This document shows positions 818-37,633 of a stretch of 64,000 bases of DNA, in pieces. This DNA comes from Thalia democratica (taxonomy: Eukaryota). Position 1 is the first letter of the stretch, and each line of letters begins with the position of its first letter. The notes under the pieces were generated by a model. That model made no database searches. It was given only the letters and a program-made list of their open reading frames with translations, and had not been told where the DNA came from. Location of the stretch: positions 63,054,001-63,118,000 of the forward strand of contig OZ241826.1 in NCBI GenBank assembly GCA_965202585.1, read 5' to 3'. A program made the translations under genes and the position numbers.

Positions 818-880
818 AAAACAATTGCAAGAAGAGGAGGAAGCAAGACTTGAAAGGGAAAAAAAGCGAGAAGAAAGAAG
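818..880 (+). CDS. Caldesmon-like gene exon: KQLQEEEEARLEREKKREER
   Basis: tacag acceptor ends 817; gttagt donor at 881; phase 2 on both sides; purine-rich coding bias. Confidence 0.8.
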
Positions 881-3800
881 GTTAGTTATGATAAATATTA
901 TGCAGAATAAATAAAGTTCTATAAATAATAACAGGGTAGCATATTTAAATGTTAGGCAATCCGTTTATTCTTATGTTTACTATATAGTACTATTGTACTA
1001 TTATTACTTTTATAGGTTCTATTATAGTATTATATAATTTCGTAAGCACTATTAACAATATTATTAAACTTTTGTTGTTTTTAATGGTGAAATATACAAA
1101 AGATATCATATAGTATAACTTTTACAAATGTATTCTAAATAAAAATTCAATGTATTTTTATTTTGATAAAATAATTAATTTCTATAATTATTCTAGTTTA
1201 TTTTTTCTTTAAAAATATACTCACAAACTTTAAAAATTTCAAATTTGTTTAGTCCTATAATTTATTTTTGGTTTAGTAGAAAAAATTTTTCATATGTAAT
1301 TACGTTATTAAGTTTTTATATTAATTTTTTGGAAATTAAAACAAAAAGTTGTTAGTAAAGCATTCGAATGGTTATGAAAATACGATGTTTAAACCACAGT
1401 TTAGTTTTCGCTTCGTTCAAAAGATTTAGTATATTTAAATTATTTTAAATAGTCATTTTAAACTTTGGAATAATCATAGTTAAAGTTTTATCTATGTGGT
1501 CTTAATTACAAGCGTTATAAGTATACAATGAAAATTAAATATTTATCGTAAAAAATGTAATTTATGTTATTTTGTTAATAGTTGTCTTGGACCGTAATTT
1601 TTTAAGTTTTATGTGCGTATTTTCAATTTTTACTCATTTAAAACTAAATTTTCTTGAGCTATTTTTGTTTTATTTGTTAAAAAATTAAAAATAATCAGTT
1701 AGGGTAAATCACTTTGATTATTTTTAAGTATTACAGTGTTTATTTTTAGGAAAAATTGAAAACGACATGTTTATATGGCTTATATAACCAATCTTGAAGT
1801 TTTTTCTTTTACATTTAAAAAGACTCCCTTGTAATAAGTTAAAAGTCAGAGACATTTGTTTGTACCAAATATCTGTACGTAGCTAAATTGTTTTTATTTA
1901 TAAGTAGTCTTAAGAAATGTTTTGCTTAAACTTTAGTGACTGATAGTATTATTAAATAATTTAAAGATTCAAATTAAAACAAAGTAATACAAAAATAGTT
2001 TATAAAAGTTTATTAATTGAATACAGTTTAATACTTAGAACTTTAAAAAATATTTACTAGCTTTTAGTTAAATAATAATTGAAATTAATTTAATAAGTAG
2101 TTGAGTTGTCTTATAAAAAGTTGTTATAATGTTGTATAACTACTACTAAAATGTAAACTGAAAAATAATAGAGGTAAATATTTTTTAAACTTTTCGAAAT
2201 GACAAAAAGTTATAGGTATATTGTATACTATCTGTAATATTTTTGTTAAATGTTTAGCTTTCAGTGTTATTTAAATAATGGAACAGCCTTTTCAAAATTG
2301 CTGCACTTTTTATATTTTAGGCCAGAACAAGATAATTAATTCAAAAATTGCTTGAACTATTATAAAAGTAAAAATTAGATAGTTATTAAATATTCTTGAC
2401 TTTTCTTGTGCAAAGCTATATATTATGGAGATAATGTGAATCTTCATTTACACGATTACACTCTATGTAATAATAATTGTTTGAATATTTTATCATTGTT
2501 ATCTAAATTGTAGCATTTCTGACTTTGATGTATAGTAAAACTGATTTATTAACTTTTTGTTAGATAATATTATCGTTTGTCTTCACATTTTACCGCAACA
2601 GATGTGAGTAAAATTTTAATATTAGAATAGAGCGATCCTTCTTTCTTACAAAATAAGTAAAAATACAAAATTTTAAAGCCTTGTAAGAATTTTTCAGTTC
2701 TTTTTTGTAAGCTGATTGAGAGGTCAAAAAATATTAAAACGTTAATAATGTGATAAGTCAGTAATAACTTAAAACTTGAAATAAAAGCTGGAGGTCTAGT
2801 TGTTATTGTTGCATTTTTTTATGAAATGATAGCCTATACACAGACTTTCATTGGAATTTCATTTGTTTATACAAGTAGTTTAAACTTTTTTTGAAAAGTT
2901 AGTTTTGCAGTTTTATAAACTTTTTGAAGTTCCATAGAGTTAGACTTATAGTTTATAATTGTTTCACACTAGTCTAATAACTTTTCACTAAGTAGAACAG
3001 TCGGAATGTACGTTAGTTTTTAATTTTATTAATGTTTTTAGTCATTGATTAGACACAAGGAACAAATTTTGAATAAGATTTCTATTTTTTTTCTAAAGAT
3101 TACAAGAACATCTAGGGTTAGAATGTTTTTTTGTTTAAATTAGGTAAATAAGTAAAGTTTCTGATTAACTTAAAAGTTTTATTTTGAAGACGACAGACTT
3201 ATTGTATAGATATTTTGGTACAGTATAAGTTTCAAGTAAAATTTTTGTTAGGTTTTAGACTAAGCTTATTAGTTATAGTTTATTAAACATGATAAAATAA
3301 TCAACGTTCAAAATTTTTGGTCAAAGGAACTGGTTATAGAAAGACCTTTGGTCATCGAGCTACTTACTAATATTATATCAATAAAATTTTTCAATTTCAA
3401 AAAACATGCTTAATTTCTTTAATAATTTTATTGTTCTTGTCAAACTAGTTAAACATCAGATTTAAAAGCTTTAAGACAACATTTTAAAGTAAAGTTCATG
3501 GAACACAGAATTACAACATTTCTTAAAGATAGTTTTATATATGAATATAAAGATTATTTTTATTTAGAAATATTTTACTATTAAAACCGTATATGTCTAA
3601 AATATAGGTTGTTTTGGTTTGAAAGCTCTATTTATAATGATTTGAAATAATTGCTGAATTTTTTGGTTTTTGATAAATAAAAAAAATATTGCATTTGTAC
3701 AATTAAAACTTGTTTTTTGTAATTTATCTGTACTGTATAAGTATTGTAATGTTATTTTATTGTTTTGTAAAACTAAAAAAAAAACTAATAAATTTAAGCT

Positions 3801-4516
3801 ATAATACCATAAAAACCATTGCTTAAACCTAAGTCTTTAAAGAAAGTATAAAAAATGAGCCGTAGAAGATTAAGGTTAGTAAAAAAAAGTATTTATAAAT
3901 ACTGTTTGTTTTACTGTCTTATTGTATTACTAGTAAATAGTTTTTAGACTTTTGTAATGTAAGTCTTTAATGTTTTGTGTTCAACGAAATTTATCATATA
4001 GTTATTAATTTTGAACTAGTCGACTACTAAAAGGTAGTTTTAAATTTAGCTTTAATTTAAGTTTAAACCAGTTTGTAAAACATTTTGATTGGAATTATCA
4101 ATTACATATTAATTATGGTTTTCATTTATATAAGGTTTAATTTGATTCACAGAGAGTTATTGTATATTTTCAGCAATTAAAAAAAACTTAATTAAATAAA
4201 AAAAACTAATTAGTTTATAGTTATAATTTGTTTTTCTGTTGGAACTATCAGCTAAAGTTATTAAAAAGTTTTGTATAATTTTGTTAAAGATTGAAAGTTT
4301 GCAAACTAAAAAGCCTACATGCCGTTTACAGTTTGACTTAAAAAAAATTAATCTTGCTCTTATAGAATATTACCGTAAAGTTTAATATATAACATTTGAT
4401 TAAGATTTTCGCCATAGTATATGTAAATTCATGAAAAAAAAGCTTGTTTGAAAATCCTTATTAGATTTTAGTAACGTAAGTTTTGAGTTAGGATCAAGTT
4501 AACGAAGAAACAAAAA

Positions 4517-4797
4517 TTAATTAGTATTAAATAAATAGAATTGTTATGGTGTTTCAGCGCACTTGTGATCGAACTTTACCGATTTCTAAGGTAGGTAAAT
4601 ATGATATTATATCTTGAAAACATGTTTTAAATAAATGTTATTGTAAGAACTTTATATTTTAAGCTATTAGTAAATTAAGATCAAAAAGCGTTTTAAGCTT
4701 TTTGATTTATATTTAAAGTAATTGTTAGTTGAATAAAAAGTGAATAAGTGCGCTGAAACACCATACCAATTCTATTTTTCCTAATTTATTATTAATT
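4517..4797. mobile_element. MITE/fold-back element with ~32-bp core inverted repeats
   Basis: 4533-4564 aaatagaattgttatggtgtttcagcgcactt is the reverse complement of 4746-4777 with 1 mismatch; AT-rich flanks extend the symmetry. Confidence 0.65.
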
Positions 4798-4855
4798 GTT
4801 ATTTAGTTTTTCTGATTTAAATTTTTTAATCTGAAAAAAAAAACGCTTTAAACAG

Positions 4856-5222
4856 GAGACAACGTGAAGTAGAAAGACAAAAAATGGCAGAATCTTTTGA
4901 AACAAACGTTTATAAAAAGTCTGCTATAAATTCTATGCAAGTAACTCAAGAACAAGACAAAATGAACGATAATTTAGTTAAGAAAGAAGAAGAGTTAAAT
5001 ACTGTTAAGACAGCAGTAAAAGAACAAAACGCTACTGATGAAAGTGAAAATGTAGTGGTTGAAAAGCCAGTTGAAGAATTGAAAGTAGAAGCAGCACCTG
5101 AACAAGATGAAAGTGGAGATTTATTAGATAAAGTGGATGATGAACCTGTTCTCGACGGATCAGAAAACAATAACTCAAGCAATGAAGATAATGTAGATTC
5201 GAAGAGCGATTCGAAATCCAAA
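4856..5222 (+). CDS. Caldesmon-like gene exon: RQREVERQKMAESF...SDSKSK (acidic spacer)
   Basis: aacag acceptor 4854-55; AG|G completes Arg from previous exon; contains ORF 4884; gtcagt donor at 5223, phase 0. Confidence 0.85.
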
Positions 5223-7883
5223 GTCAGTTTTGCTTTTATTCACTTTATAGGCTTATAAATTTTAGATAAAATTTTAAGGTATACGAGATATAGTAGTTTC
5301 GTTAATGGTTATTTACTATACAGAAAATTTTTATAGTTATGTTTCATTTCTGTGATATTTTTATTAATTATTTCTGTTAAAATTCAAAAATTAGCTGTTT
5401 TTGTATAATTTACTAATATGCATAGTTTCATCAATACTTTTTATACCTCATTTTATCAAGACTTATTTTAAAATAAACTCGGTAACGGTTTCTATATTTA
5501 TCTTAAAAATAATATTTAGAAAAGTATCTATTTAAAACTTGATGATTTTTATTGGTCTGCTATAGGATTGCTAATCGTGCATTATTCTATTTTTTATCAA
5601 TTTAATAAATTAATGATTTATACAGATTTTATTTTGTTAAAGAACGAAGTCCATATCAAAGATATACAATTTAGTAAAAAACATAATTTATTTTTATTTT
5701 ATAAAAAAGAATGAAGTCTATAGAATGGAGCATAAGTTCTAATAACAATGTATTTTACGAAAAATCTTGGCATCTAAAGGTTATTATGATTTCTAAGATT
5801 AAGTAGAGATAATTTTGAATTTTTAGATGAGTTAAAATAAAATAAATGTGTTCCATTACTATACGCTAAATTCAAAACCAAAATTTTTAGTTTTTAAGAA
5901 TAGTAAAATGTTAAGTTATTTTTCTATAGCTTTTTAATAAGCTTGAAAGACGGTACATAAGAAGATCAATACAGTATAAAACATAAAAAAAAAAGCCAGT
6001 AGTTTGTGACTTTGTTTCGAAACGACGTGTACGGTAAATTAATAAAGATTTATTTAATTAATGATAACTAAACTAGCAAATAAAGGATGAAAAATAATTT
6101 TGTTTTCTAACTAACTAACTAAAGCTATTTAGAATTTGTATCTTTGATTTTTCTAAGTTTGTCGTAACTAAAAAAGGATGATATTATCAGCTTTTTGTCT
6201 ATGTAGTGTGTTTGGTACTATTTACTTGCTTTAAAATAAAAAAAAGTCGTAAGCCTTTTGTCTACCTTATTGTTTATAAGGTGTTAATAAAATATAATGC
6301 TATGTTATGTTATACTCTTCTGATGAATATAAAACTTCAAAGGCTTTAAATTGTTTGTGAAAAAATTGCCTTTGATATAGGTCAATTAAAAGAAGTCAAT
6401 ACATTTTTGTTATTATTTAGTGAAGTATTTTGCATTTTTTTTCAATATTACAACTATGGTTTACTACGTTGAACTCGAGTTCTAAAAGAACTTGAATCAT
6501 ATTTTTTATGAGCTTGTTGCGTTTATTTGTTTTTATTTACTTTTAAAAATTTTATTTAATTGTACCCAAAAAAAAACTTAATTCTCAGGTTCAATTTTTT
6601 ACATATAATATATATATACTTCTTAACTACATATGCTTTGTTCATAACCTAAAAAAAAAGTTTTTTTTTATAGACTAATGATTCAATTTATTTGTGAAGT
6701 CTTTCGTAATTTATGAGGTTTTCGTGGATATTTATTTTCATATTTTAGACGTAATATAAAGTTTAACGTTATACTTAAGTTTGCCGCAAGGCATTTTAAT
6801 TTTACCTTATATAGCCCTAAAGCTTGCTTGAGACGAATTTATGTGTATATTTAATGAACTTATAAGTATGTGAAGAATTTAAACCAATAAGAACTAAAAT
6901 GTTTGCTGAATGATAGCTTTAACTGTGAATTACGAAACATACGTATATAGTTAAGGAGACTGCTTTAAAATGAGTTTAATTTTATTTTCAGTACTAATAG
7001 AATTAATATATTAATATTTGTATTGAAGTCAAAAATTAAAAAAACAATTAAATTTGGTTTACTTAATTTTACTTTAAAACATTGAAATTAAACACTTTTA
7101 ATACTTTAAATGTCAGTCATAATTTATTTATATATTTAATGAAAGTAGCTTCTAATATGAATATATCTATTCTAATAAAAATACTATTTCACATAAAATG
7201 AAATTGTTGCAAAGTTTGTTTAAAAAAAAACCAGCATAAAAGTTTAATGTTTAACTTATAAATTTGTTTACTTCCGAAAATATACACGATTTACTCACTC
7301 GATTTTAATACGCTTAGCATTTCTTATGACATAATCAATACCTTAAAAAAGTTTTCATAGATAAAAAATGTTAAAACAAATTGACGTAACTAATAAACAC
7401 ACGTTTAAAGAAAATGTTAGCTTATATAGAAATTTTAGTTTTGTAGATTAATGTTATTTTTGTTTCCATTTAAAAAATAGAATGGTCTAGGGCAAACCTT
7501 TAACAGGCCAATTATTCTAACTTATCTAAATCCATAAAACTGTTAATGAATAACTTAAAAAGCTAAGTTGTTTAAAAGACGTATCTAATGATTAATGTTC
7601 TGTAAAAGATAATTGTATGTAACTAATTAGATGCTTTATCCTTAGCAAGTAATATTAGATAAAGTTTATATTTTTTAATTAAATACTTCAAAATAATCTT
7701 TCCGTAGAGAATGGCAAAGACTGTTGAGTTTTTATTAGTTTACTTTATTACTAATGATTTCACTATATAATTAATGATTTTGATAGCTGATCTGCAATAA
7801 CTTTATTATAAATTAAGTTTTATAAGACACGAATTTGAAAGAAATAATTAAGCATAAAATTTTTGAAAATTATAAAAACATAG

Positions 7884-8095
7884 GTTGAAGATATGGAATG
7901 TTTAGATTCTGAAGAGGAAAAAGTGAAAAATATAGGAGTGGAAGATTCAGAATCAAATGAAGGAGAAACCGATGTTGTCGGTGAAAATGAGCCAAATCAA
8001 AATGGAAAGCCGTCATCAGAGTCTGCTAATGTTTCTGTTGATACTAAAGAAAACTTTCCCAAACTTAAAAAAGTAGAGAAAAAGTTGAATGAAAT
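7884..8095 (+). CDS. Caldesmon-like gene exon: VEDMECLDSEEE...KKLNEM
   Basis: catag acceptor, phase 0; contains ORF 7893; gtgagt donor at 8096, phase 2. Confidence 0.85.
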
Positions 8096-10154: not shown

Positions 10155-10197
10155 GCCAACAACCACTTCAGAAAATGAAGCAATGAAAATGCTCAAG
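10155..10197 (+). CDS. Caldesmon-like gene exon: PTTTSENEAMKMLK
   Basis: ttttag acceptor; AT|G completes Met; gtaaat donor at 10198, phase 0. Confidence 0.8.
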
Positions 10198-11013
10198 GTA
10201 AATTTACAGTTTTATTAGAATGTATATAATTACAAAATTCTAAACTTTTTAAGCTTTTTTTTATTACTTTAAATTTATAAAATACTTAATTATAAAGTTT
10301 ATATGTTATTGCTCATTTACAGCTACTTGAGTGTTTTTAATACTGTACAAACGTATAAAGTTAACAATAAAGTATATTTTTATTTTCATAAGATGTATAA
10401 ATATTTAAATACAAGTATGATTAAACTATAAGCATTTACTTATAAGCAATTATAGCAAATGAAAAACAAAACTAATAGATTTTGAGTAGTAAATCATTTA
10501 ACTAACAAATTTCATAAAATTTTCAAGAGTATTTTAAATTATATTTATTTTGATTTAAATGATCTTGTTTGTAGATTTTTTTCTTATAGGCTTAGCTACT
10601 TTTTACAGTCTGAGTTTTCAGAAATATATATATTTAATGGTGAATTATTTTAAAATTTGTGCAGTTGTCTATAACACTAATCTTCAACCTTTTCAAAAAG
10701 TGTACACAGTGAATAATTTTTGTGCACACTAGACTTAAAAAAAATACAAGTTATAAAAACAAAAAAACTTTTTTGAAATACTTTTGGAGTATTGATATAA
10801 AAGTAGCATACTAAGAACTGTTGATATTTATTATAAATAGACTTTTTCAATGGTAAAAGACAAGAAAAATGTCTTTTAAAATACGTTTTTTAATATTATT
10901 AAATTTTCAATGCACACTACTGCACAGATGCACATTGTGACGACCACTGGTCTATGCATTTGGTAAAGTAAAATACTTTGTATCTTATATTGCTATTTCA
11001 TCTACCTTTTAGA

Positions 11014-11174
11014 CTATGGAGTCGGCAAAATGCGGCCCAAAAAAATCTTTGAAAATATACTAGATATTCTGAGGTTTGAAATTAAAAGCAAAAAGTAAAA
11101 CTACAACTGAAGTCCGCGAGTATTTATGTTTTTGAAATTTGGCCTGCGACCACCAAATGACTGCCGATCTTTAG
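11014..11174. mobile_element. Degraded hAT (Charlie-type) MITE
   Basis: Left ctatggagtcggcaaaatgcggccc resembles the Charlie end CAGGGGTCGGCAAAC..CGGCCC; right ggcctgcgac...aaatgactgccgatc; TSD not convincing. Confidence 0.45.
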
Positions 11175-11488: not shown

Positions 11489-11584
11489 GAATTAAAACAA
11501 AAGAGACAAATTGGCGCCGAAAAGAAGCTTGAAGAAAGCAAAAAGATCTCAGATGACATTTATAATAAAATCGAAGAAAGAAGG
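11489..11584 (+). CDS. Caldesmon-like gene exon: ELKQKRQIGAEKKLEESKKISDDIYNKIEERR
   Basis: ttgccag acceptor; gtaaga donor; 96 nt, phase 0-0. Confidence 0.85.
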
Positions 11585-16210: not shown

Positions 16211-16285
16211 ACGGAAAGAGAAAAACTAAAATTAGAAGAAGAAGCAGAAAAGCAACACAGAGAAGAAGTAGACAGAAAATATCAG
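16211..16285 (+). CDS. Caldesmon-like gene exon: TEREKLKLEEEAEKQHREEVDRKYQ
   Basis: tttttag acceptor; gtttat donor; 75 nt, phase 0-0. Confidence 0.85.
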
Positions 16286-17136: not shown

Positions 17137-17280
17137 GAAAAGCTTCGTAAAGAGCGAGAAGCTAGAGAACAAAGGAGGAAGGAGTTAGATGAAAAAAAGC
17201 GAGAAAATCGTGAATTGCTTAATTCTGCAGAAGAGATCCAACTTGCTTCCAAGTCGAAAAATTCCACAATCAGCCAAAAA
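17137..17280 (+). CDS. Caldesmon-like gene exon: EKLRKEREAREQRRKE...NSTISQK
   Basis: tgacag acceptor; gtaagt donor at 17281; 144 nt, phase 0-0. Confidence 0.85.
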
Positions 17281-18861: not shown

Positions 18862-18960
18862 AAAAATATCTGAACGTGATTCTTTGATTCTTTTTTTTCA
18901 TAACTTAAATAACTTTCAAAATTTTTTTTGTAAGGTTTAATTAATAGTTTAATAAAAAAA

Positions 18961-22944: not shown

Positions 22945-25051
22945 GTAGAGAAAGTTTATGATTTTTAAGTTTTACTTATGTTGTTTCAATAAGCTTTTAT
23001 AATTTTTTTTTGTAAAATGTTTTCAATATTTTGTTATATGGTGCAGTATTTTTTGACGAAAGACTAACTGTTTGTTTTTATTTATTTATACCATTAAGTT
23101 TATTTTAAAACAGATAAATTTAGATAATAAATTAAGTTAGTTCAAACTATTTTGGTTTTTTTACTATAATTGATTAAAATTAAAATTAGTGCTTAATCTG
23201 ATTGATAAATTAAGAAAAGTACCGGTTTTCTCAAACTAATTTTACTAAAACTTTCTATAATTTATACCTTAAATACTAAAATTTGTCTTAAATAGATCTT
23301 AAAATTTTAATCATAAAAATTATAAATTTGTAGTATAAAAAGTTAACTAACAAAACAATTTAGATTTAAAAAATAACAGTTCAGTCAAAGTCAATTACTG
23401 ACCAAAAGATTTTTAATAACATAAGTAAACAAAGCAAAATTAAATAAAATAGATATGAGATATTTATTTTTTTAGTTTTAATGATGAAACATCTTTCAAT
23501 ATCTAACTTAACCGACTTTGATTTAAATACTTATGTTGAACTACTAATTTTTAAGCCTAAGTTAGATAACCATTAAGCAATAAAAAGTAATTAATAAACT
23601 AAAAACATTTGAGTTGACTACTAATCTGTTTTAATAGCTAAAAATTAAAAAAAAAGTACTTAAAGTTGATTAAATTTTTTTGTAAAACGAGTTATATGAT
23701 ATTCTAAATACAATACAATATAAAGAAGTTAATTAAAATAGAATGGTTTTAATTATTTTATGATAGTTCATGTTAGTGATTACTTATTAAAAATAATTTT
23801 TCGTTTTATATAGTTTAAAAAACAAGCTTTAGTCGTTTTGTTAAAATTTAGTTTATCATGAAATATATGAATGTTTTGTCTATTTTACACAAAAGTATTC
23901 GGAAAAGTATGTAAAGACGAAGCACATATTTTCTCTTTTGATAAAAATTTCATATACAAAAAAAAAACTTTCAGACGAATTAAGTTTTTATCTTTTTAGC
24001 GAACAAAGTAAAAAGAAAACTAATCTGTTTAAACCAAGCTGCCCAAAAGGTTTAAATATTTTTTCAGTAAATAAGCGCTAAAACCATTTTTGAAGGAAGT
24101 ATCAATTATTTGCTAGCGATTTGTTTTATTTATGAAGTACGCAAATTATGATACGTAGAACATGGTTTGTTAACATATTTTGTTGTTTTGCATTTAGTGT
24201 TGTTCAATTTAATGTTCTTGTATACTTTAAATCCATATTGTACTTCTTAAACTGGACTAAGAATATTTGATTAATAGTTTATCACACATTTATATAAAGA
24301 TCTAAACTTTATAATGATCTGAATAGCAGTATTGTAATAATTAAATATTTTTATATCCTTGTTTACGTCATTTACAAACTGATTTGTTATAAATTCTGTA
24401 TCAGTAGCTTAAAGTTCAATTTATGAAATGATGTATCTGTAATAATTTGTAGAAAGTAAATTAACTGACCAAGCTGGGTTTAAATAACGCAACATATTTG
24501 GTTTTTAACCTTTCAGTATGTTTTTATTTGTATTTAATGTTCGGGGTTTTTTTGAAGCTTAGTTGAAAAACACAAATAAAAACTTTATATAAAATAACTC
24601 TACTAGTTTTCAAGTAGCTAAGAAAACACATAAACAACTTTATTTAAACTCAAGTAGTTTTTGAAAGTTTTATTAAGTTATAGTTTAAACTGTAAAATCA
24701 TTAAAATTAAAAACATCTTTCAAGTTATGTAGAAATAAAAGTCTATAGTATAAAACAAAATTCTTAATTGTTAAAACTTTTCAGTTAGAAAATTCTGACT
24801 ATCTTAACTAAAATGATATTCAAATTGACATTTGTTTGTAGAGTTTTCTGCTAACTTTTGAACCTTTTTTTAAATTGCATGGACAAATTTTTATTTATAA
24901 TAGTTATATTTTCAAAATTTTAAAACAATAATGAAAAAGTATTGTTAAATGTATTGTTGATTTTAGCCTATTTTTGTTTTATTTTCTTTTATCAGCTGTG
25001 TTGTTTGTGCTTTACAAGTGATAATTATTGCAGAGTTTTTGTTAGAAAATA

Positions 25052-27424
25052 ATGGATAGTTGTAATAGAAAAAAACCGCCGTCGGCACCAAAACGAACAA
25101 ATAGCAGAAAAATAATGCAGAATTACAAACCGCAAGTTCAAGAAAGAAGTAATGAATGCAGTGAAGTTGAAACCTGTGCTGATACTTTGCACAACACAGC
25201 AACCGACTTCTTGGACTTTCTCGACAAGTTGGAGGAGGTCAAGGCAACTGGGAACTCACAAGACTTGCTCAAGTTTATTGCCACAGACGGAAGAAAAAAG
25301 GGAAGCAACGGAAGTTCGAGTAAAGTGCGTGAAAAGCAGCATATGTTTCAAGGCGGGGGGAGCCCAATTAAAAAGACACAAAGCTTTGCTGCGAGGAGGA
25401 GCTTGCCTGCTGAAAGTAAACGAGAAAGAAGCAAGACTCAAACACCTTTGAAAATAATCGAGGAAGCAAAAAATAAAAATGCTGCGAGCAAAGCTCGCCT
25501 AGCTGCTAAAAGAGAAAGAAGTAAAACTACGACTCCTATTAAAAGTGCTAAGGTTTTTAATGTGAGTGAATTAAAAACTGTAACACCTGTTCTTGATGAA
25601 GACAAAGCAAATGTTTCAAATGACAAGCCTATCGACATGAAAGAGAAGCCTTCGTTTAAGGAAAAAAAGTTAACAGGAACTACATTAACTAAGAAAGATA
25701 AGTTTACTTCTGCTATTAACAAACAGTCGCAAAAGAATGAGAAAAGTTGTGCTCCTAAAATATCTCCAAGAAATTCTAGTAGTATAAAATATCAACTAAG
25801 AGCTGGCAAAACTGCTTCAAAACGTTTGAAAAGAACTGATGAGAATAGTAAATTAAAAATTAGTTCAGAATCGATTAAAGTGGAAAAACCAGATTTGGAA
25901 GGAGTTTTTACAAAAAATTTAAAAAAATATTCTAACTTTTCAGAACATAAAGATATTTCAAACGGAAGTAGTTTTGTTCCTGATGTAAATAGTTCGAATA
26001 GTGTACTTGAAACTTCTGATGAACGAGACAGCAAAACAGATAAAAAGTTGGACAATGTTTGTGTTAATAAACTTGAGCTAGAATCTTTAAACTGTTCAGA
26101 AAACATTAAAAGTGATAACGTAATACTTTGTGACGACAAAACAACTCCTAAAACAATACCAAAATTGACAAATGCAAATTTAACATGCAATAAAAATGAC
26201 TCAACTCTGATTAAAAGTAGTTCACTTTCAAGCTCTTCTGAAAAAGAGTTTGATGAAATTGAGGGAAAAACAACACAAGATTTATTATCTCTTTCAACTT
26301 TTAAAGATCTTGATAAAAAATGTGACGAAAAACCTGAACTAAAAGAAAATAAAAGAACGAACTTGATATCAAGCTTTTCAAATGTAAATGATCCCTTAGA
26401 TAATAAAGATGTAAGTTCTTTTAAAGAAATAGAAGTACTTAACAATCAGTTTTCATCAGATAAATCATTTAAAAGGGATTCTTATTTAGAACCAAGTGAA
26501 GTTTATAGTAATATTGCGCTTCAAAGCATTGCTACACAAAGTTCGTGTAAAAAATGTGAGGAAAACAGAGGTTCAAATCAAGACGAAAGTAAAGTAAAGT
26601 CGACAGAGTATGAGTCTTTTTCAGATAACCCTGTATCTACAAACGCTCCGATATCAAGTATTACCAAAACTTCTTCTGAAATTTTAGTCTGTGATAATAT
26701 TTCACCTAAAGAGATTAATGAGCACAACTTAACAAACACTGTTGTTCATAAACCTCTCGATGAAAATAATACTTCTTCTAAGGTTATTAATGATAATACG
26801 CTTTCAGATTTTGGTCTTAACAGTGTTATTAGCTATAAAACAAAAACTAACACTAGTAATAAAACTAATTCTAACACTTACAACAATGATTTAAGCAACA
26901 ATATTAGTGATTGTAAAAACAATGCACCTACTACTAAAAAGCATGAAGATAAAAATAGTTTTACTACACAAAAACTAAACACTAAAAAAGTTAGTTCGGC
27001 AAATTCATTAAATAATGAATTAAATGGTAATAAAAAAAGCAATGAATCTGTAAAATTTGAGACGAAACCACAAATTCCACCGAAACCAAAAGTAGCTCCT
27101 AAACCTAAATTAGATTTAAACCAAAAATTAACACAAAAACCAAAAGTACCTATTAAGCCAAAAGGTCTCATGAGCAGTCATTCAAGTCTAGGAACAAAGC
27201 ACACTAACAGAAGTAACATAGTAGAAAATTCATCTTTTGTAGAAATGTTCAGTAAGACCGAAGAAAGTTCTAGTATTAAAAAAGACGAGCAAATGGATAC
27301 GGAGGGCGAAAATAAAAGAACAAACTTGTTATCAAGTTTTTCAAATGTACATGATCCCTTAGGTAATAATGATGTAAGCTCTTCTAATGTTGACCTTCAA
27401 GAAGAATATAATCAAGTTAACTCG
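25052..27424 (+). CDS. Large low-complexity S/K/N/T-rich exon (791 codons) of the + strand gene, likely an alternative N-terminus
   Basis: 793-aa ORF; ATG in aaaataATGg context just after in-frame TAG, which is also an acceptor (exon could start 25046, phase 0); probable gttggt donor at 25052+2373=27425 joins exon 29769 in phase 0. Confidence 0.8.
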
Positions 27425-29768
27425 GTTGGTTAATTTATTTAAAGTTTGTTTTTGTAAGTGTATCAAATTGAAAATAAAAATTTTGAAATATTTTTGTTTA
27501 ATATGATAAAAGTAAAGTATTAGACGTTAATTGGACCGGATGAAGGGTTTGTAAGTAAGCATAGGTATAAAATGTTTTAAACAATTTTATATGTTTTTGT
27601 ACTTGACTCAATGATCCACCTAGTTTTGGTAATAACGCATTTTTGCTTTCTAATTATAAATTTACTGATATGCATGTAGGTAAATTCAAATTAAGTAAGC
27701 AGTCACATAGTAAATAGTTTACTTTGTGTTGTGAAAAGAAAATTGCTTGGTTTATTAACCTTATTTGGAATGTACTTATTATCTTTAAGCAATTCTTAAT
27801 GTAATAAATATATAATAAAAAGAAAAAAGATGTTTACAAAAGTAAACAACCTATAGTATTTAATATTTAAGCTATGTTTCAACTAAAAATATTGAAATTA
27901 CTGCAAGGTTTTTAATACTTCAAGCAGTTACTTTAATTATTGACTTAGAAACTTTTTTTTATTACATCTGATGCTTATTTCTATTGAATAGTGATGGTTT
28001 AAACTATGTGTCAAGAACTGCTTACTTTACAGTTAAATGTTTTTTATAACCCAAACGTAATCTAAATACTTTTAGAGAATAAAGTCAAATTAAAAACGCT
28101 GTAAGATTAGTTTTAGTTAGATATGATACTTTTATCCAGTCAAATAAAAGTATATATTAACATATAACAACTATAATACAAAGTAAAGAATTATTTTATA
28201 TAATGTTATATCAAATGTATGAAATTCATCGTGATGAGGTTTATTTTATATTTGTAGTTGTATATACTATAACAACAGCTTATTTTGAAAGTCAAGTGCA
28301 GCAATTACACGTTCTTTATAAAGCTTTTTAAGTTTGTATTTTTGTTTTGAAGTTTGTTTTATACACTTATTTAGGAAGGTCATAAAATAGCTTGCAAATA
28401 TAACATGTGTGTACGGTTTACTTTATGTGTTATATGATTTAAAATAAGTTTTAATATTTAGAGTTTTATTAAAATTATATTCAGTGCTCTCAAAATACTG
28501 TTAGCTATCCAGTACTGTAATTTTAAAACTTTCAAATGTTATTTTAAACAATTTATATAGTTAAAAAACTGTTACACTATAAATAACTGATAATTTCAAA
28601 CAAATATTTTTTTCTGTATACTGTTTACATATTATAAAGTATTTGCTAAATTTTGGTGTAATAATTAACTTCGTCACCTGAATAAACTCCACAGGCTGCA
28701 TATTTTATCAGCATTTATTATAAAGAGTCGGTTGGGAGAAAAAAAAACTTTAATGCATCTTTTCTCGCTACATCTTGCCTTTTTTATCATCTAAATAGAT
28801 GTTTTTAGTCAACTTTTTTAATTGTAAGGGTGTTTTATTACGCTTAGCGGACATAAACTGTTTCATTTCATATCTTTACTTTTTTTGACCGTATAATGTA
28901 TGAAAATAGTTACTTTCTATGTCTATTAGTATTTCAAAGCTGTAAGCTGTTTTTCTATTGCTGATGAGAAAAAAATACAAGTACTTATGTGTTTTATCTG
29001 CGTAGTTCTTTTCATTTTCACATAAACTTGAATGAGAAAATTTGAATAGATGACGTCGAAGTATTTTCTAAACATTGTGACATCAAGTTTACGCCTAACA
29101 TAAATTTAAGTGGTTTTGCGTCACGTATATATGCTGTATTTACGTTTATATAAGACTTTGTTTCTCTTTGAAGAAACAGTTATCATTTACAAAAAAATTC
29201 TAAATTAAATAGGTAGTAGAGTTGTTTTAGTCAATTTGGAATTGCTTTTATACTTTGAAAATATTTTTTCACTTCCGAATTGCACTCAAGTTCAATAGAA
29301 ACTATTCACGTAAATTACACGTTATTGAATTTTAAGTCTTATATTTTAGATTTGTTTTGTTGACATTGTTAAACGTCTTTAATTGAAATAGATATATTAG
29401 TTAAATATTATAATTAAAAATATATTATCGTAAGTACCCATTAGCATTTCTTTTGTTTAATATGTTTATGAACAAAATATTTTTTAAAGTAAAAGATTAT
29501 TATTTAAAAAACTTATTAACATGCTTGATCTGTAGATACTTTTTTTAATGCTCAAATATTTGAATGTAAATACTGTGTATAAAATAATGATTTAAAGACT
29601 ATAGAATTATTTTTGATTTATTATAAAATTATTTTTAAGAGATTAATATAATGTTCTTATGAACCTATTGACTTATTTATTTGATATTTAGCAAGGAAAC
29701 TAAGTTTTTATTTTTATTGAAAAAAATATTTTAAATTCAAAACTTTATTTACATTTTAAAATTTTCAG

Positions 29769-29797
29769 GTTGGACAACTCAACAAGCAAATTGAAAA
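29769..29797 (+). CDS. Caldesmon-like gene exon: VGQLNKQIE(K)
   Basis: ttttcag acceptor; gttagt donor, phase 2; joins acceptor 31282 to give QIEKWKSGQV. Confidence 0.6.
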
Positions 29798-30606
29798 GTT
29801 AGTTATATCAAATTTTTAGTACTTTTTCACTGTTTGTATATAATCAGTCTCTTAAACTTTAATATAGTTTATTTATTAAATGTTGATATAGTTTTATTAA
29901 TCAGTATTTAACTTCTATTTTAAGTCTGAAAATATGATTTTATTTATATTGTAGCATCACCTTAAAAGGAGAAAATTGTTTTTAATAATATAAAATTTAA
30001 TCAAAATAGTAGTCGAAATTTGATGTTTCCTAAACAAAAATTAAAAATGATTATTAAAATGATAAAATTGATAAACAAAAAATTTGATGATTTTTTAATT
30101 GTAAAGAGTTTATAAAATCGTTTGAAATACAATTCTTAGTTATTATAGGTTAAATAGATTTAACAACTGGATTTAAAACAATGACACTTAAACATTTTAG
30201 TATTGTTTTTTCTCTCTCAAGTTCTTGTGCTGTTGTTTTATTACTTACTTTAGAAGCCACTTTCTAAAGTGAAAATAAATTGAAAAATGTTATATTATCC
30301 ATCTTTAGAAGATTAAAAATTTAAGCAGCTTATTTTTTTAGAAGCTTAAGTATATTATTTAGAATTAATTAGTTATATAAACTTTATATGCTTTTATCCC
30401 AAACTTTGTTTTTAAACCATAAAGTCCATTTATAGTTACTACCTAGATAAATACTATACATAATTATACATGCTTTTTTCTGCTTTTTTTCTAATGTGTG
30501 TTAACATTTTATAGACTCCGTAGATCTGTTCTTAAATTTATTTGAGAGCAGTGAAACGCAGTTAGTTGAAATAAAGTTTTAGCACAAGAACATCTGTTGT
30601 AAACTT

Positions 30607-30631
30607 TATATATATATATATATATATATAT
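30607..30631. repeat. (TA)12 microsatellite
   Basis: Direct read. Confidence 0.9.
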
Positions 30632-31222
30632 GTAGGAAAAAATACAAATTTGAACTAATTTTTAAGCCACACTATACTTACTAAAATTTATTGTTGTTAA
30701 AAAACTTTAAAAAAAAATCGTTAGGATTAAAAAATGACTAATTATATTTAGTTTTTTCTATTATTCAATACTTTTTATTATTTTAATAGTTAGATTTATT
30801 AATGATGGCGATTCCCATTTTACTTAATGATAATTCCTGTTGGTTTTCTGATCAAACAATTCATTTAGTGGTCTAACCATTTTAGGAATTATTTAAGAAA
30901 AAAACAGTCTATATAAATTTTGATTTGGCGTGTTGACTTAGATCAATTTCTATTAAAAACTAAACAGTGCAAAAGTGAAGTCTGTCGCAGTTACTCCAAA
31001 AATGAGTGAGAATATTAATTCAAGAATGGAGAAGTACTCTATGTCTTCTAACAAAAATAAAGTTTGGGCATTTTATTTTTAATCAAAACTTTGATAGATT
31101 AAATTATTATATTTTATGCAATACTAATACTAATTTTAAACAACATAACAAACAGTTTTCAGATAAGTTCAGTTGTTTGGATTGTAAGCGATTAGAGCAA
31201 CTAAATGAATAATTTCTAACAG

Positions 31223-31324
31223 GAAAAACAGACATCCACTCAGATTAATATTACGAAAAATGTAAGTTATACAAAAAATAGGTGGAAAAGTGGTCAAGTT
31301 TACAAAAAAGAGGAGAAAAAAAAA
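31223..31324 (+). CDS. Caldesmon-like gene exon with two acceptors (31223 phase 0; 31282 phase 2): ...WKSGQVYKKEEKKK
   Basis: ctaacag acceptor gives EKQTSTQINITKNVSYTKNRWKSGQVYKKEEKKK in frame; aaatag acceptor at 31280-81 gives the same W frame; gtttgt donor at 31325. Confidence 0.65.
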
Positions 31325-33802
31325 GTTTGTTTTGTATTACAATGAATTACTATTTTTTGAATTGAATTTGGCTTAAGTAGTGTAATAATTGAGCTGTAAA
31401 CACACTTCTTTTGTGTTGCCCTTACAACATCAGTAAATGCATTGAAAAAAAAATAAGTAGAAAACAGATCATAAAATTTTTATTGGTAACAATCTGTTTG
31501 CAAATTAGTTTTAATAAGTATATTTAACTTGTGTGGATCATTTGTTAGTCATTTAAACTTAGTAGAACTGTTATAATAAATACTTTAAATTTCTATTGTT
31601 TGTAATAATGTTTTTATATTATAGTGTACTTATATATATATATATTTTGTATACTAACATTCTTCTGTTGTGCTTGATGTTTTTCTGTCACTTATAATCT
31701 TCCCAATATTTAAGTGTTTGCTAACAAAACAGATAGTACACAATGCTAATTATAAATAGATAAATTAGTACTAATAGTATATTAAATGATAAACATTTAT
31801 GAACATTGAGTACTTTAATTTTTTTCTTTTATATACATTTAAAATGCGTAATGATAGATTCTGAGGAATATATAATTATAATAAAAGTATTTCTCTTTTA
31901 CAACATTTTGGTACTGTTTTTCTTAAATTTTATATTTTTACCGAGAATATAGAACTTTTCAGCTAATTTAATTGAATAATATGTTAATTTTCATTGTCCT
32001 ACTTTATAAGAAAATAGGTACGTTTTCTTTTTCTTTAGGTTCATTCAGACTAGTTGAAAGTTAGAAAGATCAGTATGAGTTGAAGGTTTAGAAGCACTGA
32101 GACTAACTCAAGCTAGTTCAACATGTCGATAAATTGAGATTCTCGTAACTTGTGTAACGTTTTTATTTTGTATAAGCTTAAAATTTTGTTATTATCCTCA
32201 ACAGTCTTTAAAAATTTATTTAAAGGTTAAGTTCTGGTACTTGTTTTTGCTTAAATATGAGAGTTTTGGTATTTAATTTGGGGTAGCTCAGAAAAGTTTT
32301 ATGGTAACAAAATGTAACGAATTAACTTAAATAGTATTCTTTATGATTAAATTTAGTGAGCTCAAGTCATTGGTTATTGTGAAATTACCTCTATTTAAGT
32401 TTGTACCACTTTTCGATCATAAAACTAACTGCACTACCTCAAATTAATGCTGAAAGTGGCTTATAAGCACTTTTTTTTCGATGAGTTAGTGAGATTTACT
32501 GATATACCATAATTGTGTAACAAATGTTTTAATGTTTATTTTATCTAGTTCCAAATTTTTTATTAAGTGTAATTTCAAGTTTACATTATGAAGATATTGT
32601 AAAAACTATGATTTTATCATATACAAGATGACATACATTTTTATCAAAACATTCTTTGAAACTTAAATTTTTTAAACTTTAGATGTTTATGTTTTTCAAA
32701 CTTTTTGAACAATAAAAAAAGTTTTTTTTTTCAGTTATTTGCCAGCTTGTAATGTGCAAGCATGTTTTAATTTCAGTTTTGTCATTAGGAAAGTAAAATA
32801 TAACTTGTTTAATCTATGTCTAGACTCTAGAGTACTCATAGTATTTCCTAGTTACTGTTTAACTAAATCTAACTTAAGATACTTTTCTGTAACTGAGTTT
32901 TCTGTTTTAAAAATAACTAACTCTGTAGATATTCGTGCATTAAAAAGCTGAAAAAAAGTTATTATTTTCATTTAAGTTTATGAGACCAACACATCTGTAA
33001 AAAATTAGTTCTCATTGCCTATAATGTTTAAATTCTTAATACCATACCCAAGCAAGTTTACCATGTGTTAAGTAGTCAATTAAGCTAGTTATTTACAAGT
33101 TTTTTAAAAACAGTGTACTTTTTATTTTATAAAAATAAATTAAAACTTACACTTTTGGTTTTAAGTATTTTTTTAGTTTGGCAAAAATGTTGTTATTATA
33201 GTTTAACTGTTTGTTTTATTTGAAATGTATTGTTACACTTTAATGTTTAATCTTAATTCACGTTCTAAAGTAAAACAACATAGACAACAATGAACATTTA
33301 AAAAAGTCATGACTCGACATTTATTTCACAGTGTAGGAAATTTTTTTATGCTTACTTAAAAAACACGACTTAAGTTATTACTAACCGTTTGATGTTTATA
33401 ATATATCAATGTTGTTTGTAGTATCCAAATACAACTTTTTTATTATCACCTATTTTTTAGATAGTGACAGGTAGACGCAATATATTTAACCTCTTCCTAT
33501 GTTCTTTTAAAAAACATTTTTCGTACTTTATAGTTTCAAAAGGTATTTTTGTTGCTGTAGTTAAACTCATTTAGGAAGTTATAAGTAAAAAAAAGTTTCA
33601 CCGAAATAAGTTTAACGCTTACAAAAAATTAAAGATATTTACATGTGATCAGCGTTTACCGTTGCTTCTACCTTTACCTTTAAAGATTACAAGCCTATTT
33701 AAAAAAATAAATTTGTAATTATTTGTGCCAGTATTTATTTTAATTGTTTTCTAGTTAAGTTTAGTTATTATAATAAAAAAACTCTAAATAAATTTAACAC
33801 AG

Positions 33803-33970
33803 ACTCCAAACAAAGCAATATTGGGAGCTTCACTTAACAAGAGAAAGAATATTTTTGAGAATGGCAAAAATCAGTCGCAACCAACTACAACTAAGCAAGT
33901 AGCTGTCGGTGGAATTTCAAATCGAAAAGAGATGTATTTGAAGCAAACTGAAGACAAAAAAGAAAACAAA
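33803..33970 (+). CDS. Caldesmon-like gene exon: TPNKAILGASLNKRKNIFE...GGISNRKEMYLKQTEDKKENK
   Basis: acacag acceptor; in frame with ORF 33821; gtaaat donor at 33971, phase 0. Confidence 0.8.
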
Positions 33971-34112
33971 GTAAATTTTATTTATAATCATTTTGACAGG
34001 TATGTTATTTTTATAGTTGCTGAATGCTTCGCCTGTCACTGAACTAGTAAAATGAAGCTATATTACAAAGAGTTATTGAAGAATTATGATATACTGAACC
34101 GTTACTTTAGAA

Positions 34113-34274
34113 CAGGGTTTTCTAAACTTTTTTTCAAATATACTAAAAAGAAACACATAAGACCTTTTTTTGCTCTTCATCATCAACTCCTGGATATCTA
34201 GTGTAAGTTTCAGATTATGACCTCATGGCCCCCTTGTGGCTCCTTTATGCTAGTGGCCCCCAAAGAATACCCTG
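34113..34274. mobile_element. 162-bp hAT (Charlie-type) MITE
   Basis: Ends cagggttttcta / gaataccctg; perfect 8-bp TSD ctttagaa at 34105-12 and 34275-82. Confidence 0.8.
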
Positions 34275-34789
34275 CTTTAGAATGAGTTTTGTTTCATAAA
34301 ATGAATTAAGTTAACTAGCTTTTTTTTTATTAATGTGAGCTTATATTATTTTTAGTTAGACGGTATTTACAAAAGTAAATAAACATGCATAAGAGTTAAC
34401 AACTTACGTTTATTTAAACATACTTTTAAACCTAAAGGTCTAAGGTAAGTTTAAAATCTTCTACAACCGTGTCACTACTTTCTTCTAAAAAACGAGTTTA
34501 TTTAAATAATCGAGGTTCTTTATTTTTAGTTACTATTTATTTCCAACAAACTTAATTTTTTCAGACTCTTTTATATTTAAGTGAAATAAAGTTTTTAAAT
34601 TTTATAAAAATATAAATATAATTAGGCAAACTAATTTAGTAAAATTATAGATCTCGCTTTTTAATGGTTACTGATTTTAGTTAAACATCTCTGATAAAAA
34701 CATATAGTAGTTGTAAAATTCAGTCTGAGTAAAATATTAGTAATGATTTAGTATTACAAGTGGTAAATTACTTGTTGTAAATATTTCAG

Positions 34790-34885
34790 GATAGCAGTCA
34801 GTCACATGCAAACAAATCATCAAAGTTAAAACAACTGGACAAATGGGAAAGTGGTCAAGTTACTTCTGCAAAGTCTCCGAATAAG
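34790..34885 (+). CDS. Caldesmon-like gene exon: DSSQSHANKSSKLKQLDKWESGQVTSAKSPNK
   Basis: tttcag acceptor; gtgttt donor; 96 nt, phase 0-0. Confidence 0.8.
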
Positions 34886-35151
34886 GTGTTTTATAAAGTA
34901 TTTTGAAGTTTTTAAAAGTTAATGCAGAGTATTAAATAAATTTCCTAACATTCATTCAATCATTACAGTCACTTTACTATCAATTATTACCCTAATATTT
35001 TAAACTCTCAAAAAGAACTATTTTCAAAATTGCACTTTTAGTTTTTAAAACCGAATTAATTTTAAGCTCCTTAAACTTGTACTTAATTAATTTGGATAGG
35101 TGTGTGATTTGTAGATGCGATGTAGATTAATTTGTTATATTTTTTGTACTA

Positions 35152-35935
35152 CAGTAACCTCTCGGATCTTTACGCACTCGTGACGTTACGCACTCTCGTT
35201 TAGTTACGCATTTCAGAATTCTATAAAATTCAGAAAATAAAAGTTTTCATTTTTTTTTTTAATATTGCACAAATTAGGTTTAATGTATATTTTTGAATTA
35301 AAATATGTTTTTGAATGCTAACACACCTCTTTATATCTTTAGACTTTGTAAATTTATGTTCCTTGACTAATTGATAAACATTTAGTTATACCTCAGTATA
35401 TCAGAAATTTTGTTAACAATATGAGATTAAATCAAATTTCTGAAATAAACATGACTGTGTTTAATAATAAAAGTATAGTGAAATAATGAGAGTTTAAAAC
35501 ACAAAGAAATAATACAGCAGTCTTGCCCTATATATTAATAAACACCATTTTATAATTGTAAAGAAATGCTCAATTATAAATTGAATTTGCTAAGTATAAA
35601 AGAATATAAATATCACATATAAATAAAGATAAAGATAGTTTCTACTTATTATTAAAATAGTAAAATTATTTCTACTCGTATTATTATTTCATAGAAACTC
35701 AAATCCTTTTTTTTAATATATATATATAGTTTTATCTGTTGTTTTCATATTTATTAATTAAGTAAACAAATAGTTAAAAGTAGGAAAGTGCCCATTCTGC
35801 TTTTAACTAGAAGCAATATTAAAAAACAGCCATTATAGTGAGTATATTTGGTACCTCTCGTTTCTTTACGATCTCTCATATCTTTACGCACTTTTTCTGT
35901 GGACACAATGTGCGTAAATAAGCGAGAGGTTACTG
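35152..35935. mobile_element. Tc1/mariner-superfamily (pogo/Tigger-like) MITE, copy 1
   Basis: TIR cagtaacctctcg / cgagaggttactg; TA on both sides; subterminal ttacgca repeats; no ORF. Confidence 0.85.
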
Positions 35936-36431
35936 TATTTATTGATAAATAAAAGTTTAAAAATCAATATTAAACATTAAATCATAATGACCCATAATTA
36001 CTTGGTGGCATAACTGCTTTACAGAACATTGAATAAAGTATGTAAAGATTAATTGATTTAGAAATAAAAATCACTCATTAAAGTTTAGATAAACAAAAAA
36101 TAAGTAGTTTTGTGTAATAAAAAGAAGAAAGAAAATAAGAATGAATCCATGAATTAACATGCTTTATTCGAATAAATTGAGGAAAACATATGTCGATAAG
36201 GTGCATATTTAAAATTTACTTTTAAATATTTCATTAGAAATTTTTGTTAACTCTATAGCAACAAGAAAAAGTTTAAAAGTATCTAATGCTGTGATTTTTT
36301 GTGCTTAGTTGTTTTCTTAGAGCTTCTGTATTATAAGGAGACTTTCGATAATACACTTAGTACCATTACTTTATAAATTAGAGATGTTTTAGTTCTACAT
36401 AAAACTTGACTCATGCTATTTCTAATTTATT

Positions 36432-36486
36432 GGATCCGGATCCAGCTAGAACCAGATCCGGATCATTTTACAAATCAAGATCCGGT
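36432..36486. repeat. Relic of the CCGGATCCGG-repeat hAT family
   Basis: ggatccggatcc...agatccggatc...agatccgg; no termini found. Confidence 0.4.
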
Positions 36487-37558
36487 AGATAGTAACATTG
36501 TTTTTCTTTAGTTCTAAGTTTTTTATAGTTTTTCATCATTTTAGTAGCATTATTTGTATTGCATGTTGTTAAAAAACTAAATAAGAGTCAGGTTACAAAA
36601 ATTCCTGTTAAAAAGCTTAAACATTTAAAATTATTGGATGTTACTGAAAAATGTGTTTAAATTACACGGTTGACATCTTTTTTTACACAGATTTACTTTT
36701 AAAAGTAGGCTTAGAATAGTTGTTTAATAGTTGAGAGTTGAGAATAGAGATCGTGTAAAAGAGTAGGTTTAAAACGGCATGTAGTTGAAATTTTACGTAA
36801 AAAAAACTAGGGTATTATCTGTGCAAAAGTACTACCCACAAAAGTCAGTTAGTCCTTGAGAGTAAAACTCCTTATAAATATGAGTTATACCAGTTTGATT
36901 GGGTTACTTTTTTATATTTGAATATGAAAATTGAAGTAGTATAAGTTAACCTTGAAATGTTTCAAAGCAAAACTAATAATTTTTAATTGTCTTGTTAATT
37001 TCATTTGATGTATAACGCAGAAAACGAGTACAACACGTTTTTTAATTAATGAATTCTTATAGCTTAAAATCATAAGAGGCAAGTACTTTGAAAAGTCAAT
37101 TGTTAGTTTTTAATGAGATCTTAGTCTAAAAAATTGGGTTTCAGCCAAAAAATATTTTTGCTAAAAAACTCTGAATTTTTCAACTGAAAAACTGAAACTT
37201 GTGGAGCATTAAAAACACTTTCTGTTTAAACTTCTAGATCAACGTTTATATAAGATAACATACTGTTAATTTCCTTACTTACTTTTTATTAGTTCAATAA
37301 CTGTTGGTGTCTTTCATTAACTACAAACATTATTAAGTTATTTTTGGCTGACTAGCTTTATTCAAGCAGTTTTTTAATTGATTTTTACTGTATTTTTTTT
37401 CATATAGTAAATTTTGAAAACTTTAAGTTACAATGCTTTAAACACAATACAAATGTAAGACTGTTATTTTATATCTCTACATACATTAGTTTAATTTTCA
37501 TTAAACATATTAAAAATTAAGACTAAATACAAACACGCTTAATTTTGGATAATAACAG

Positions 37559-37633
37559 GTGACAATTAATATCAGTTCATCTGGTGTCAAAGACAAGATG
37601 AACAAGTACAAAAGTTTAACTCAAGAAAACTAA
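37559..37633 (+). CDS. Last coding exon: VTINISSSGVKDKMNKYKSLTQEN*
   Basis: taacag acceptor, phase 0; TAA 37631-33 directly followed by gtgagt. Confidence 0.75.
   Translation: MTINISSSGVKDKMNKYKSLTQEN

Follow-up and report, generated by a model that had tools for sequence, protein, structure and literature searches.

A strongly diverged gene of a pelagic tunicate, probably of the caldesmon/LSP1 family of actin-filament regulators

Vertebrate caldesmon (CALD1) in its light form comprises approximately 540–560 amino acid residues (aa) and carries about four copies of a short aromatic actin-binding motif, and the N-terminal half of LSP1 is short and acidic. Motifs of this kind belong to a class of short linear F-actin-binding motifs, V-x-x-L-x-x-x-F-E as in Lifeact (the "SFM" type), defined by a 2026 study; among the instances in its supplement are human caldesmon VRNIKSMWE, LSP1 VASTKSRWE and LIMA1 LNRLKMMFE. 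The same paper recalls that the caldesmon motif is displaced from actin by calmodulin, describes such motifs in about 100 human proteins of unrelated kinds and proposes that they originate "ex nihilo" (PMC13364712). According to two reviews of muscle evolution, which cite Steinmetz 2012, caldesmon is a novelty of the vertebrates (PMC5167519, PMC4685582), and a 2024 phylostratigraphy assigns CALD1 to the tunicate-vertebrate ancestor, listing in its Table S1 a "non-muscle caldesmon" of Phallusia mammillata, Phmamm.g00004987, which matches human CALD1 with a BLAST E of 5e-38 (PMC11203038). Our literature search brought up no publication about caldesmon from a pelagic tunicate. The gene described here lies on the forward strand of a 64,000-nucleotide stretch of the Thalia democratica genome (assembly GCA_965202585.1, contig OZ241826.1, positions 63,054,001 to 63,118,000), hereafter the window, within which an initial annotation made from the letters alone had placed a caldesmon-like gene at positions 818–37633.

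The tunicate gene occurs once in the genome, is expressed and, with a probability of roughly 0.7, belongs as a strongly diverged representative to the caldesmon/LSP1 family, whose members regulate actin filaments. It yields a light form of 594 aa and a heavy form of 978 aa. The light form consists of an N-terminal charged helix (~110 aa), an acidic spacer, a second Glu/Lys/Arg-rich helix and a 187-aa basic tail (isoelectric point, pI, 10). The order of parts in vertebrate light CALD1 appears to be the same, that is, a charged N-terminal helix, a spacer, a second Glu/Lys/Arg helix and a basic tail with aromatic actin-binding motifs, and composition, pI and conservation pattern, taken region by region, fit it. 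The N-terminus, MDD..QRREIRRKKRQE, may resemble human CALD1 MDDFERRRELRRQKREE, and ..QLNKQIENAKVKS..INSRMEKY.. may likewise resemble ..FLNKSVQKSSGVKS..IDSRLEQY.. of the human protein.

The tail contains six copies of the motif h-x-x-(K/R)-x-x-x-(W/Y/F), of Lifeact/SFM type and 20–60 residues from one to the next, namely INSRMEKY, VSYTKNRW, LNKRKNIF, ISNRKEMY, (K)LKQLDKW and VKDKMNKY when written from P1 to P8. Four were called by pattern scan and the two Trp copies were read from the protein sequence. The aromatic residue, which is Trp in two copies and Tyr or Phe in four, is kept at all six positions across the host, three related species and a second family introduced below. Human VRNIKSMWE (CALD1) and VASTKSRWE (LSP1) resemble VSYTKNRWK, LNKRKNIFE and LKQLDKWE of the tunicate protein, the LSP1 sequence being the closest single match to VS(Y/D)TKNRWK; motifs of the VRNIKSMWE type are present, in a class which is not exclusive to the caldesmon/LSP1 family. 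A conserved Ser-Pro-x-Lys (SPNK) adjoins one of the Trp copies and is aligned to TPKK in the second family.

Part of the support for homology, all of it indirect, comes through that second, bridging family. When a profile of the tail was searched against 1.84 billion representative proteins, its match outside its own family was P0011 (E 7e-7), and further searches enlarged the group to P0011, P0020–P0024 and L007, the last of which was the sole new relative from a scan of metagenome contigs and is widespread in marine metatranscriptomes, with parts in runs from 12 studies. These sequences come from a marine planktonic eukaryote with transcripts of 44% GC; they are caldesmon-like, less diverged than the host gene, and possess seven aromatic motif copies in the tail and two alternative N-termini. 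The two families align collinearly at ~30% identity over ~180–210 residues (hhalign probability 96.8%, E 2.5e-10), and the similarity extends to non-motif stretches (..SEKV-QLNK.., ..TPK.. and Ser/Thr-Pro-x-Lys). Comparison of the bridging family with the Pfam Caldesmon profile PF02029 (length 498) reveals matches for P0011 (E 5e-6) and for its extended open reading frame (ORF) in L003 (E 2e-8), both at profile positions 447–488; the non-charged pieces of P0011 match the profile alone (positions 445–488, E 4.7e-5; positions 422–470, E 0.0066), and P0022 matches at positions 130–436 (E 3e-9). Caldesmon domain 4 corresponds to profile positions ~420–498, and the tail connects to it transitively, by way of P0011. 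A language-model search of the ESM Atlas with the whole light form returned 13 nearest named clusters, all of them PF02029 (caldesmon, LSP1) at scores of 0.85–0.86, with an LSP1 cluster within the top three and the first other family, MAP7, at rank 14; scores below 0.9 are rated by the tool as a lead only.

Several results weigh against this assignment. PF02029, whose silence on the C-terminus the initial annotation had named among the outcomes that would count against it, gave zero matches at E<=10 in five scans of the exons, the joined tail, the light forms P0004–P0006, the heavy form P0002 and ten sub-ranges; a six-frame genome scan with the profile returned zero candidates whatsoever and hence says little. 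The tail-profile search of 1.84 billion proteins contained no vertebrate caldesmon or LSP1 at E<=1e-3. The bridging family scores 26–36 bits with PF02029, below its curated cut-off of 50 bits, and the language-model scores lie below the 0.9 mark. With the tail alone the language model yielded a chance-level match only (a CRBG1 fragment, 0.81), and a sequence search of the Protein Data Bank (PDB) gave no relevant match. Motifs of the SFM class are short and able to arise independently. Two further details of the original interpretation were abandoned. TPNK, read there as a Cdk1-type site, is IPNK or TTSK in close relatives, which rules it out as a conserved site of that kind. Because the motif is repeated, its copies pair in different registers under MAFFT and hhalign, and a one-to-one equivalence with the motifs of human caldesmon is therefore not established. 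What survives of the term caldesmon-like is a distant, family-level homology reached through the bridging family and the language-model clusters. Such homology, short of proven orthology, is in our judgment probable on these sequence comparisons.

An unrelated actin-binding protein, in which an array of Lifeact/SFM motifs evolved independently behind a charged helix to give caldesmon-like function with no homology, would account for the missing direct PF02029 match, for the lack of a vertebrate match in the exhaustive search and for the ambiguous register of motif pairing. Such motifs are present in ~100 human proteins of unrelated kinds and reportedly emerge de novo (PMC13364712). We nevertheless regard this explanation as quite unlikely. 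The similarity to the bridging family includes non-motif stretches and is collinear over ~180 columns, the bridging family matches the Caldesmon profile specifically at its C-terminal end, and the neighbors of the whole protein are caldesmon and LSP1 only until MAP7 appears at rank 14. LIMA1 (EPLIN), with LNRLKMMFE, shares the same class of helical F-actin motif (hydrophobic P1, aromatic P8, often Glu at P9), but other SFM/Lifeact proteins have one or two motifs in unrelated architectures, whereas here six stand in a conserved collinear tail that is common to a family matching the Caldesmon profile. That the protein is a charged coiled coil or disordered chain of a generic kind, unconnected with actin and similar to caldesmon through composition and chance, is highly improbable: although a large part of the sequence is low-complexity Glu/Lys/Arg or Ser/Asn/Lys, there is no Pfam match and the tail alone finds a chance-level language-model match, the tail has no such Glu/Lys/Arg excess and evolves under strong purifying selection (ratio of nonsynonymous to synonymous substitution rates, dN/dS, 0.11–0.13), its fixed-spacing aromatic residue is kept in 6/6 copies across the host, three related species and the second family, and E 7e-7 among 1.84 billion proteins together with 96.8% in hhalign are not composition effects.

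As a diverged caldesmon/LSP1-type regulator, the protein would lie with its tail along F-actin through multivalent, weak, repeated helical motifs. The two Trp copies may allow Ca-calmodulin to release it from actin, and the SPNK beside one of them may allow release by proline-directed kinases. The charged helices would act as a spacer or as a tether to a second partner, which in caldesmon is myosin, and the heavy form would take this actin-binding tail to another partner.

The structure of the gene was established from RNA. RNA contigs of a single metatranscriptome study (four runs, X1–X4) were aligned to positions 29500–35400, and the transcripts L009, L008 and L010 were mapped onto the window extended by 20 kb on its upstream side. 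The contigs reveal GT..AG joints at 29797 to 30968, 31061 to 31223, 31324 to 33803 and 33970 to 34790, and the confirmed 3′ coding chain is 29769–29797, 30968–31061, 31223–31324, 33803–33970, 34790–34885 and 37559–37633. Exon 29769 possesses two alternative upstream partners, the end of exon 17137–17280 (X2, X3) and the end of the ORF at 25046–27430 (X1, X4), and the mapping of the full transcripts, L009 for the light form and L008 for the heavy, follows the exons one by one. The gene is thus expressed and yields two mRNA forms with six 3′ coding exons in common. The light form has 15 coding exons, 14 introns that are all GT-AG, and an intact ORF of 594 aa. The features, all on the forward strand, are as follows (negative positions lie upstream of the window).

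−3407 to −3281 (3.4 kb upstream of the window), + strand: light-form coding exon 1, with the ATG at about −3372; found in L002
−1259 to −1131 (1.2 kb upstream of the window), + strand: light-form coding exon 2; found in L002
818 to 880, + strand: light-form coding exon 3 (..KQLQEEEEARLEREKKREER..), matched by L009 at 96–100% identity with AG/GT borders
4856 to 5222, + strand: coding exon 4, in which the first charged helix ends and the acidic spacer starts; transcript mapping
7884 to 8095, + strand: coding exon 5, Asp/Glu/Ser-rich acidic spacer, absent from the exons listed in the initial annotation; transcript mapping
10155 to 10197, + strand: coding exon 6 (..TTSENEAMKMLK); transcript mapping
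11489 to 11584, + strand: coding exon 7 (ELKQKRQIGAEKK..), where the second charged helix starts; transcript mapping
16211 to 16285, + strand: coding exon 8 (TEREKLKLEEEAEKQHREEVDRKYQ); transcript mapping
17137 to 17280, + strand: coding exon 9, the last light-specific exon, ending ..SKSKNSTISQK and spliced to 29769; RNA contigs X2 and X3
25034 to 27424, + strand: alternative first coding exon of the heavy form; X1 and X4 contigs join 27424 to 29769, and P0002/L008 agree
29769 to 29797, + strand: first shared exon (VGQLNKQIE-), start of the conserved C-terminal tail; joint 29797 to 30968 in four runs
30968 to 31061, + strand: shared exon (..AKVKSVAVTPKMSENINSRMEKYSMSSNKNK) with aromatic motif 1; joints 29797 to 30968 and 31061 to 31223
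31223 to 31324, + strand: shared exon (EKQTSTQINITKNVSYTKNRWKSGQVYKKEEKKK) with motif 2, containing Trp; RNA joints
33803 to 33970, + strand: shared exon (TPNK..LNKRKNIFENG..GISNRKEMYLKQ..) with motifs 3 and 4; joint 31324 to 33803 in four runs
34790 to 34885, + strand: shared exon (..SSKLKQLDKWESGQVTSAKSPNK) with motif 5, containing Trp, and the conserved Ser-Pro-x-Lys; RNA joint and transcript mapping
37559 to 37633, + strand: last coding exon (VTINISSSGVKDKMNKYKSLTQEN) with motif 6 and the TAA stop at 37631–37633; transcript mapping
40095 to about 40869, + strand: exon of the 3′ untranslated region (3′UTR); L009 and L008 both run from 37633 to 40095

The stop codon forms the very end of exon 37559–37633, a 2.46-kb intron (37634–40094) follows directly, and the 3′UTR lies wholly in a separate exon. 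In the host's own genome of 802 Mb the family profile matches one locus only, best at exon 33803–33970 (E 6e-16); the gene is single-copy.

Most of the exon reading in the initial annotation was borne out. All the peptides it quoted are encoded on the + strand at the positions given, and two of its joins, 818–880 to 4856 (giving EEEARLEREKKREERRRQREVERQK) and 10155–10197 to 11489 (giving EAMKMLKELKQKR), occur in the transcript-derived protein P0005. The 31324 to 33803 junction, by which a Trp is followed by ..KKK-TPNK (W-KSGQVYKKEEKKK-TPNK), is GT..AG in contigs of all four RNA runs, and GISNRKEMYL (33803–33970) and KWESGQVTSAKSPNK (34790–34885) are both exonic. A join of 29797 to 31282, giving QIEK-W, does not exist; at the joints found in RNA, exon 30968–31061, which had been overlooked, encodes ..SENINSRMEKYSMS.., exon 31223–31324 had been taken too short (31282–31324), and the protein reads ..KQIEN-AKVKS.. 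and ..YTKNR-W-KSGQVY... As to the extent of the gene, 818 is indeed an exon start and the stop lies at 37631–37633, but the gene is larger by two upstream coding exons and the 3′UTR exon.

A cassette of 113 nt (32041–32153) between exons 31223–31324 and 33803–33970 is present in one RNA contig at a depth of 4.6, against 175 for the main form. It carries in-frame stops and one non-canonical border, and this isoform is probably unproductive or noise.

The heavy form begins at an ATG at 25052 that is closely preceded by an in-frame TAG, and its donor at 27424 joins 29769 in frame. Its alternative exon of 2.4 kb (a 795-codon ORF, 25046–27430) encodes 791 Ser/Asn/Lys-rich residues, including a Lys/Pro-rich stretch, and this segment replaces the N-terminal 407 residues of the light form. 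The counterpart in a species ~89% identical at the DNA level is L008, a 3739-nt transcript which starts at the heavy exon and encodes P0002 (978 aa); this protein, found by a word-based protein search, starts MDSCNRKK.. in the large ORF and continues through the shared 3′ exons, and a search with its tail retrieved the light forms of relatives (P0004–P0006, ~600 aa). Since L008 carries only five bases before the acceptor at 25033/25034, the heavy form may start either from its own promoter or by a spliced leader. Residues 1–130 (25052–25441) hardly vary among three species and match no Pfam family. In an AlphaFold model of the heavy N-terminus the mean predicted local distance difference test score (pLDDT) is 64, and the sole confident part is a helical hairpin at residues 37–79 (pLDDT 82–90).

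Further along the heavy exon, downstream of residues 1–130, ..HMFQGGGSPIKKTQSF.. gives the impression of a loose resemblance to the WH2/thymosin "LKKT" actin-monomer motif. An internal duplication at 26345–26424 and 27308–27387, ~86% identical at the DNA level when compared with L008, encodes ..ENKRTNL(I/L)SSFSNV(N/H)DPL..NDVSS... Its second copy lies just ahead of the splice donor, and in P0024 and L007 a comparable stretch, ..S(M)FS..DDDV.., stands ahead of the same junction. The Lys/Pro-rich stretch at ~26990–27090 (..PQIPPKPKVAPKPKLDLNQKLTQKPKVPIKPK..) is kept in P0003, a protein 54% identical overall. The alternative N-terminus of L007 contains a long KPEI(S/T)(R/K) repeat.

Comparison with two related species gave, for the light form, dN/dS values of 0.09 over the N-terminal 110 residues, 0.50 in the acidic spacer, 0.18 in the second charged helix and 0.11–0.13 in the tail; in the heavy exon residues 1–130 gave 0.08 and the remainder 0.66. 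The N-terminus, the second helix and the tail are under strong purifying selection, and constraint is relaxed on the spacer and on the bulk of the heavy exon.

By comparison with CALD1, to whose VRNIKSMWE both VSYTKNRWK and LNKRKNIFE bear a likeness and whose clusters are the nearest in the language model, the tunicate protein is of similar size but differs in lacking a direct PF02029 match, in carrying six motif copies against about four, in having Tyr or Phe in place of Trp in four of the six copies and in its unconserved TPNK. The long form is also made differently. Heavy caldesmon inserts a central repeat between the helices, whereas here the long form is read from an alternative first coding exon (ATG at 25052), so that the heavy and light forms are not distinguished by inclusion of a central repeat exon. 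In this respect the heavy form, like P0024 and L007, has the build of LSP1, in which a caldesmon-like basic C-terminal half stands behind an unrelated N-terminal half. It differs from LSP1 in that both forms come from one gene and in that the N-terminal segment is 791 aa long, basic and Ser/Asn/Lys-rich. Phmamm.g00004987 is likewise a tunicate protein and the expected ortholog of the host gene. It would be much less diverged than the host protein if its E of 5e-38 is not inflated by charged low-complexity regions.

The switch of N-termini is shared with the bridging family. At the same ..V(N/G)QLNK.. junction P0022 has a charged helix and P0024 and L007 have a different N-terminus, and by reading of the sequences a short ..S(M/S)FS..(D)..DV.. 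stretch precedes the junction in both lineages. An old design with two forms, broadly comparable to the vertebrate caldesmon/LSP1 pair, is thereby suggested, and, as the same switch occurs in the second lineage, the design would predate the split of the two. Whether the tunicate locus represents the ancestral caldesmon/LSP1 state, one gene whose shared tail is joined to either a charged-helix ("caldesmon") or a disordered ("LSP1-like") N-terminus, is on balance doubtful; were it true, a dual-form gene could have been divided between CALD1 and LSP1 following the genome duplications of vertebrates. Should the second lineage be non-chordate, the caldesmon/LSP1 family would also be older than Olfactores.

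The host is a pelagic tunicate. In its mitochondrial COX1 gene (contig C1833) 34 AGA/AGG codons fall on invariant glycines (FDPVGGGDP, FFGHPEVY, IPTGIK, HLAGVSS), and AGA/AGG as Gly is the ascidian/tunicate code. The close orthologs of the gene were retrieved from metatranscriptomes of marine origin and from a catalogue of marine eukaryotes. GH6 and Cellulose_synt, marks of the tunicate cellulose synthase, had no match in genome scans. The initial annotation had supposed an AT-rich, non-vertebrate genome, as is the case (GC of the window 21–35%, with no assembly gaps), and had thought of a basal invertebrate; the tunicate code places the host instead in the sister group of the vertebrates, which is not basal. 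It had also considered that orthologs might already be described in this lineage, and in part they are, given the ascidian "non-muscle caldesmon" of Table S1 (PMC11203038). The gene would accordingly add to a known family a new member of unusual divergence, from a lineage in which one is expected, and the finding does not demonstrate that a basal invertebrate has caldesmon. The presence of a functional gene of caldesmon/LSP1 type in a pelagic tunicate supports an origin no later than the tunicate-vertebrate common ancestor, in agreement with the 2024 phylostratigraphy (PMC11203038), and the locus offers a natural variant, with six motifs, two of them with Trp, and two N-termini, for testing ancestral features of thin-filament regulation.

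Several nuclear COX1 fragments (numts) with many stop codons lie within ~100 kb on contig C4 (56842736–56945724; L005, L006), and others on C757. Within the window, an interspersed repeat of ~850 bp is found in two copies, 77% identical, at 35150–35940 in the last coding intron and at 41428–42264 downstream of the gene. RNA contigs accumulate at 34031–34227 and 35016–35400, outside the exons of the gene, and probably derive from repeat copies elsewhere. The region 52000–64000 is higher in GC (30–35%) and contains long ORFs on the − strand.

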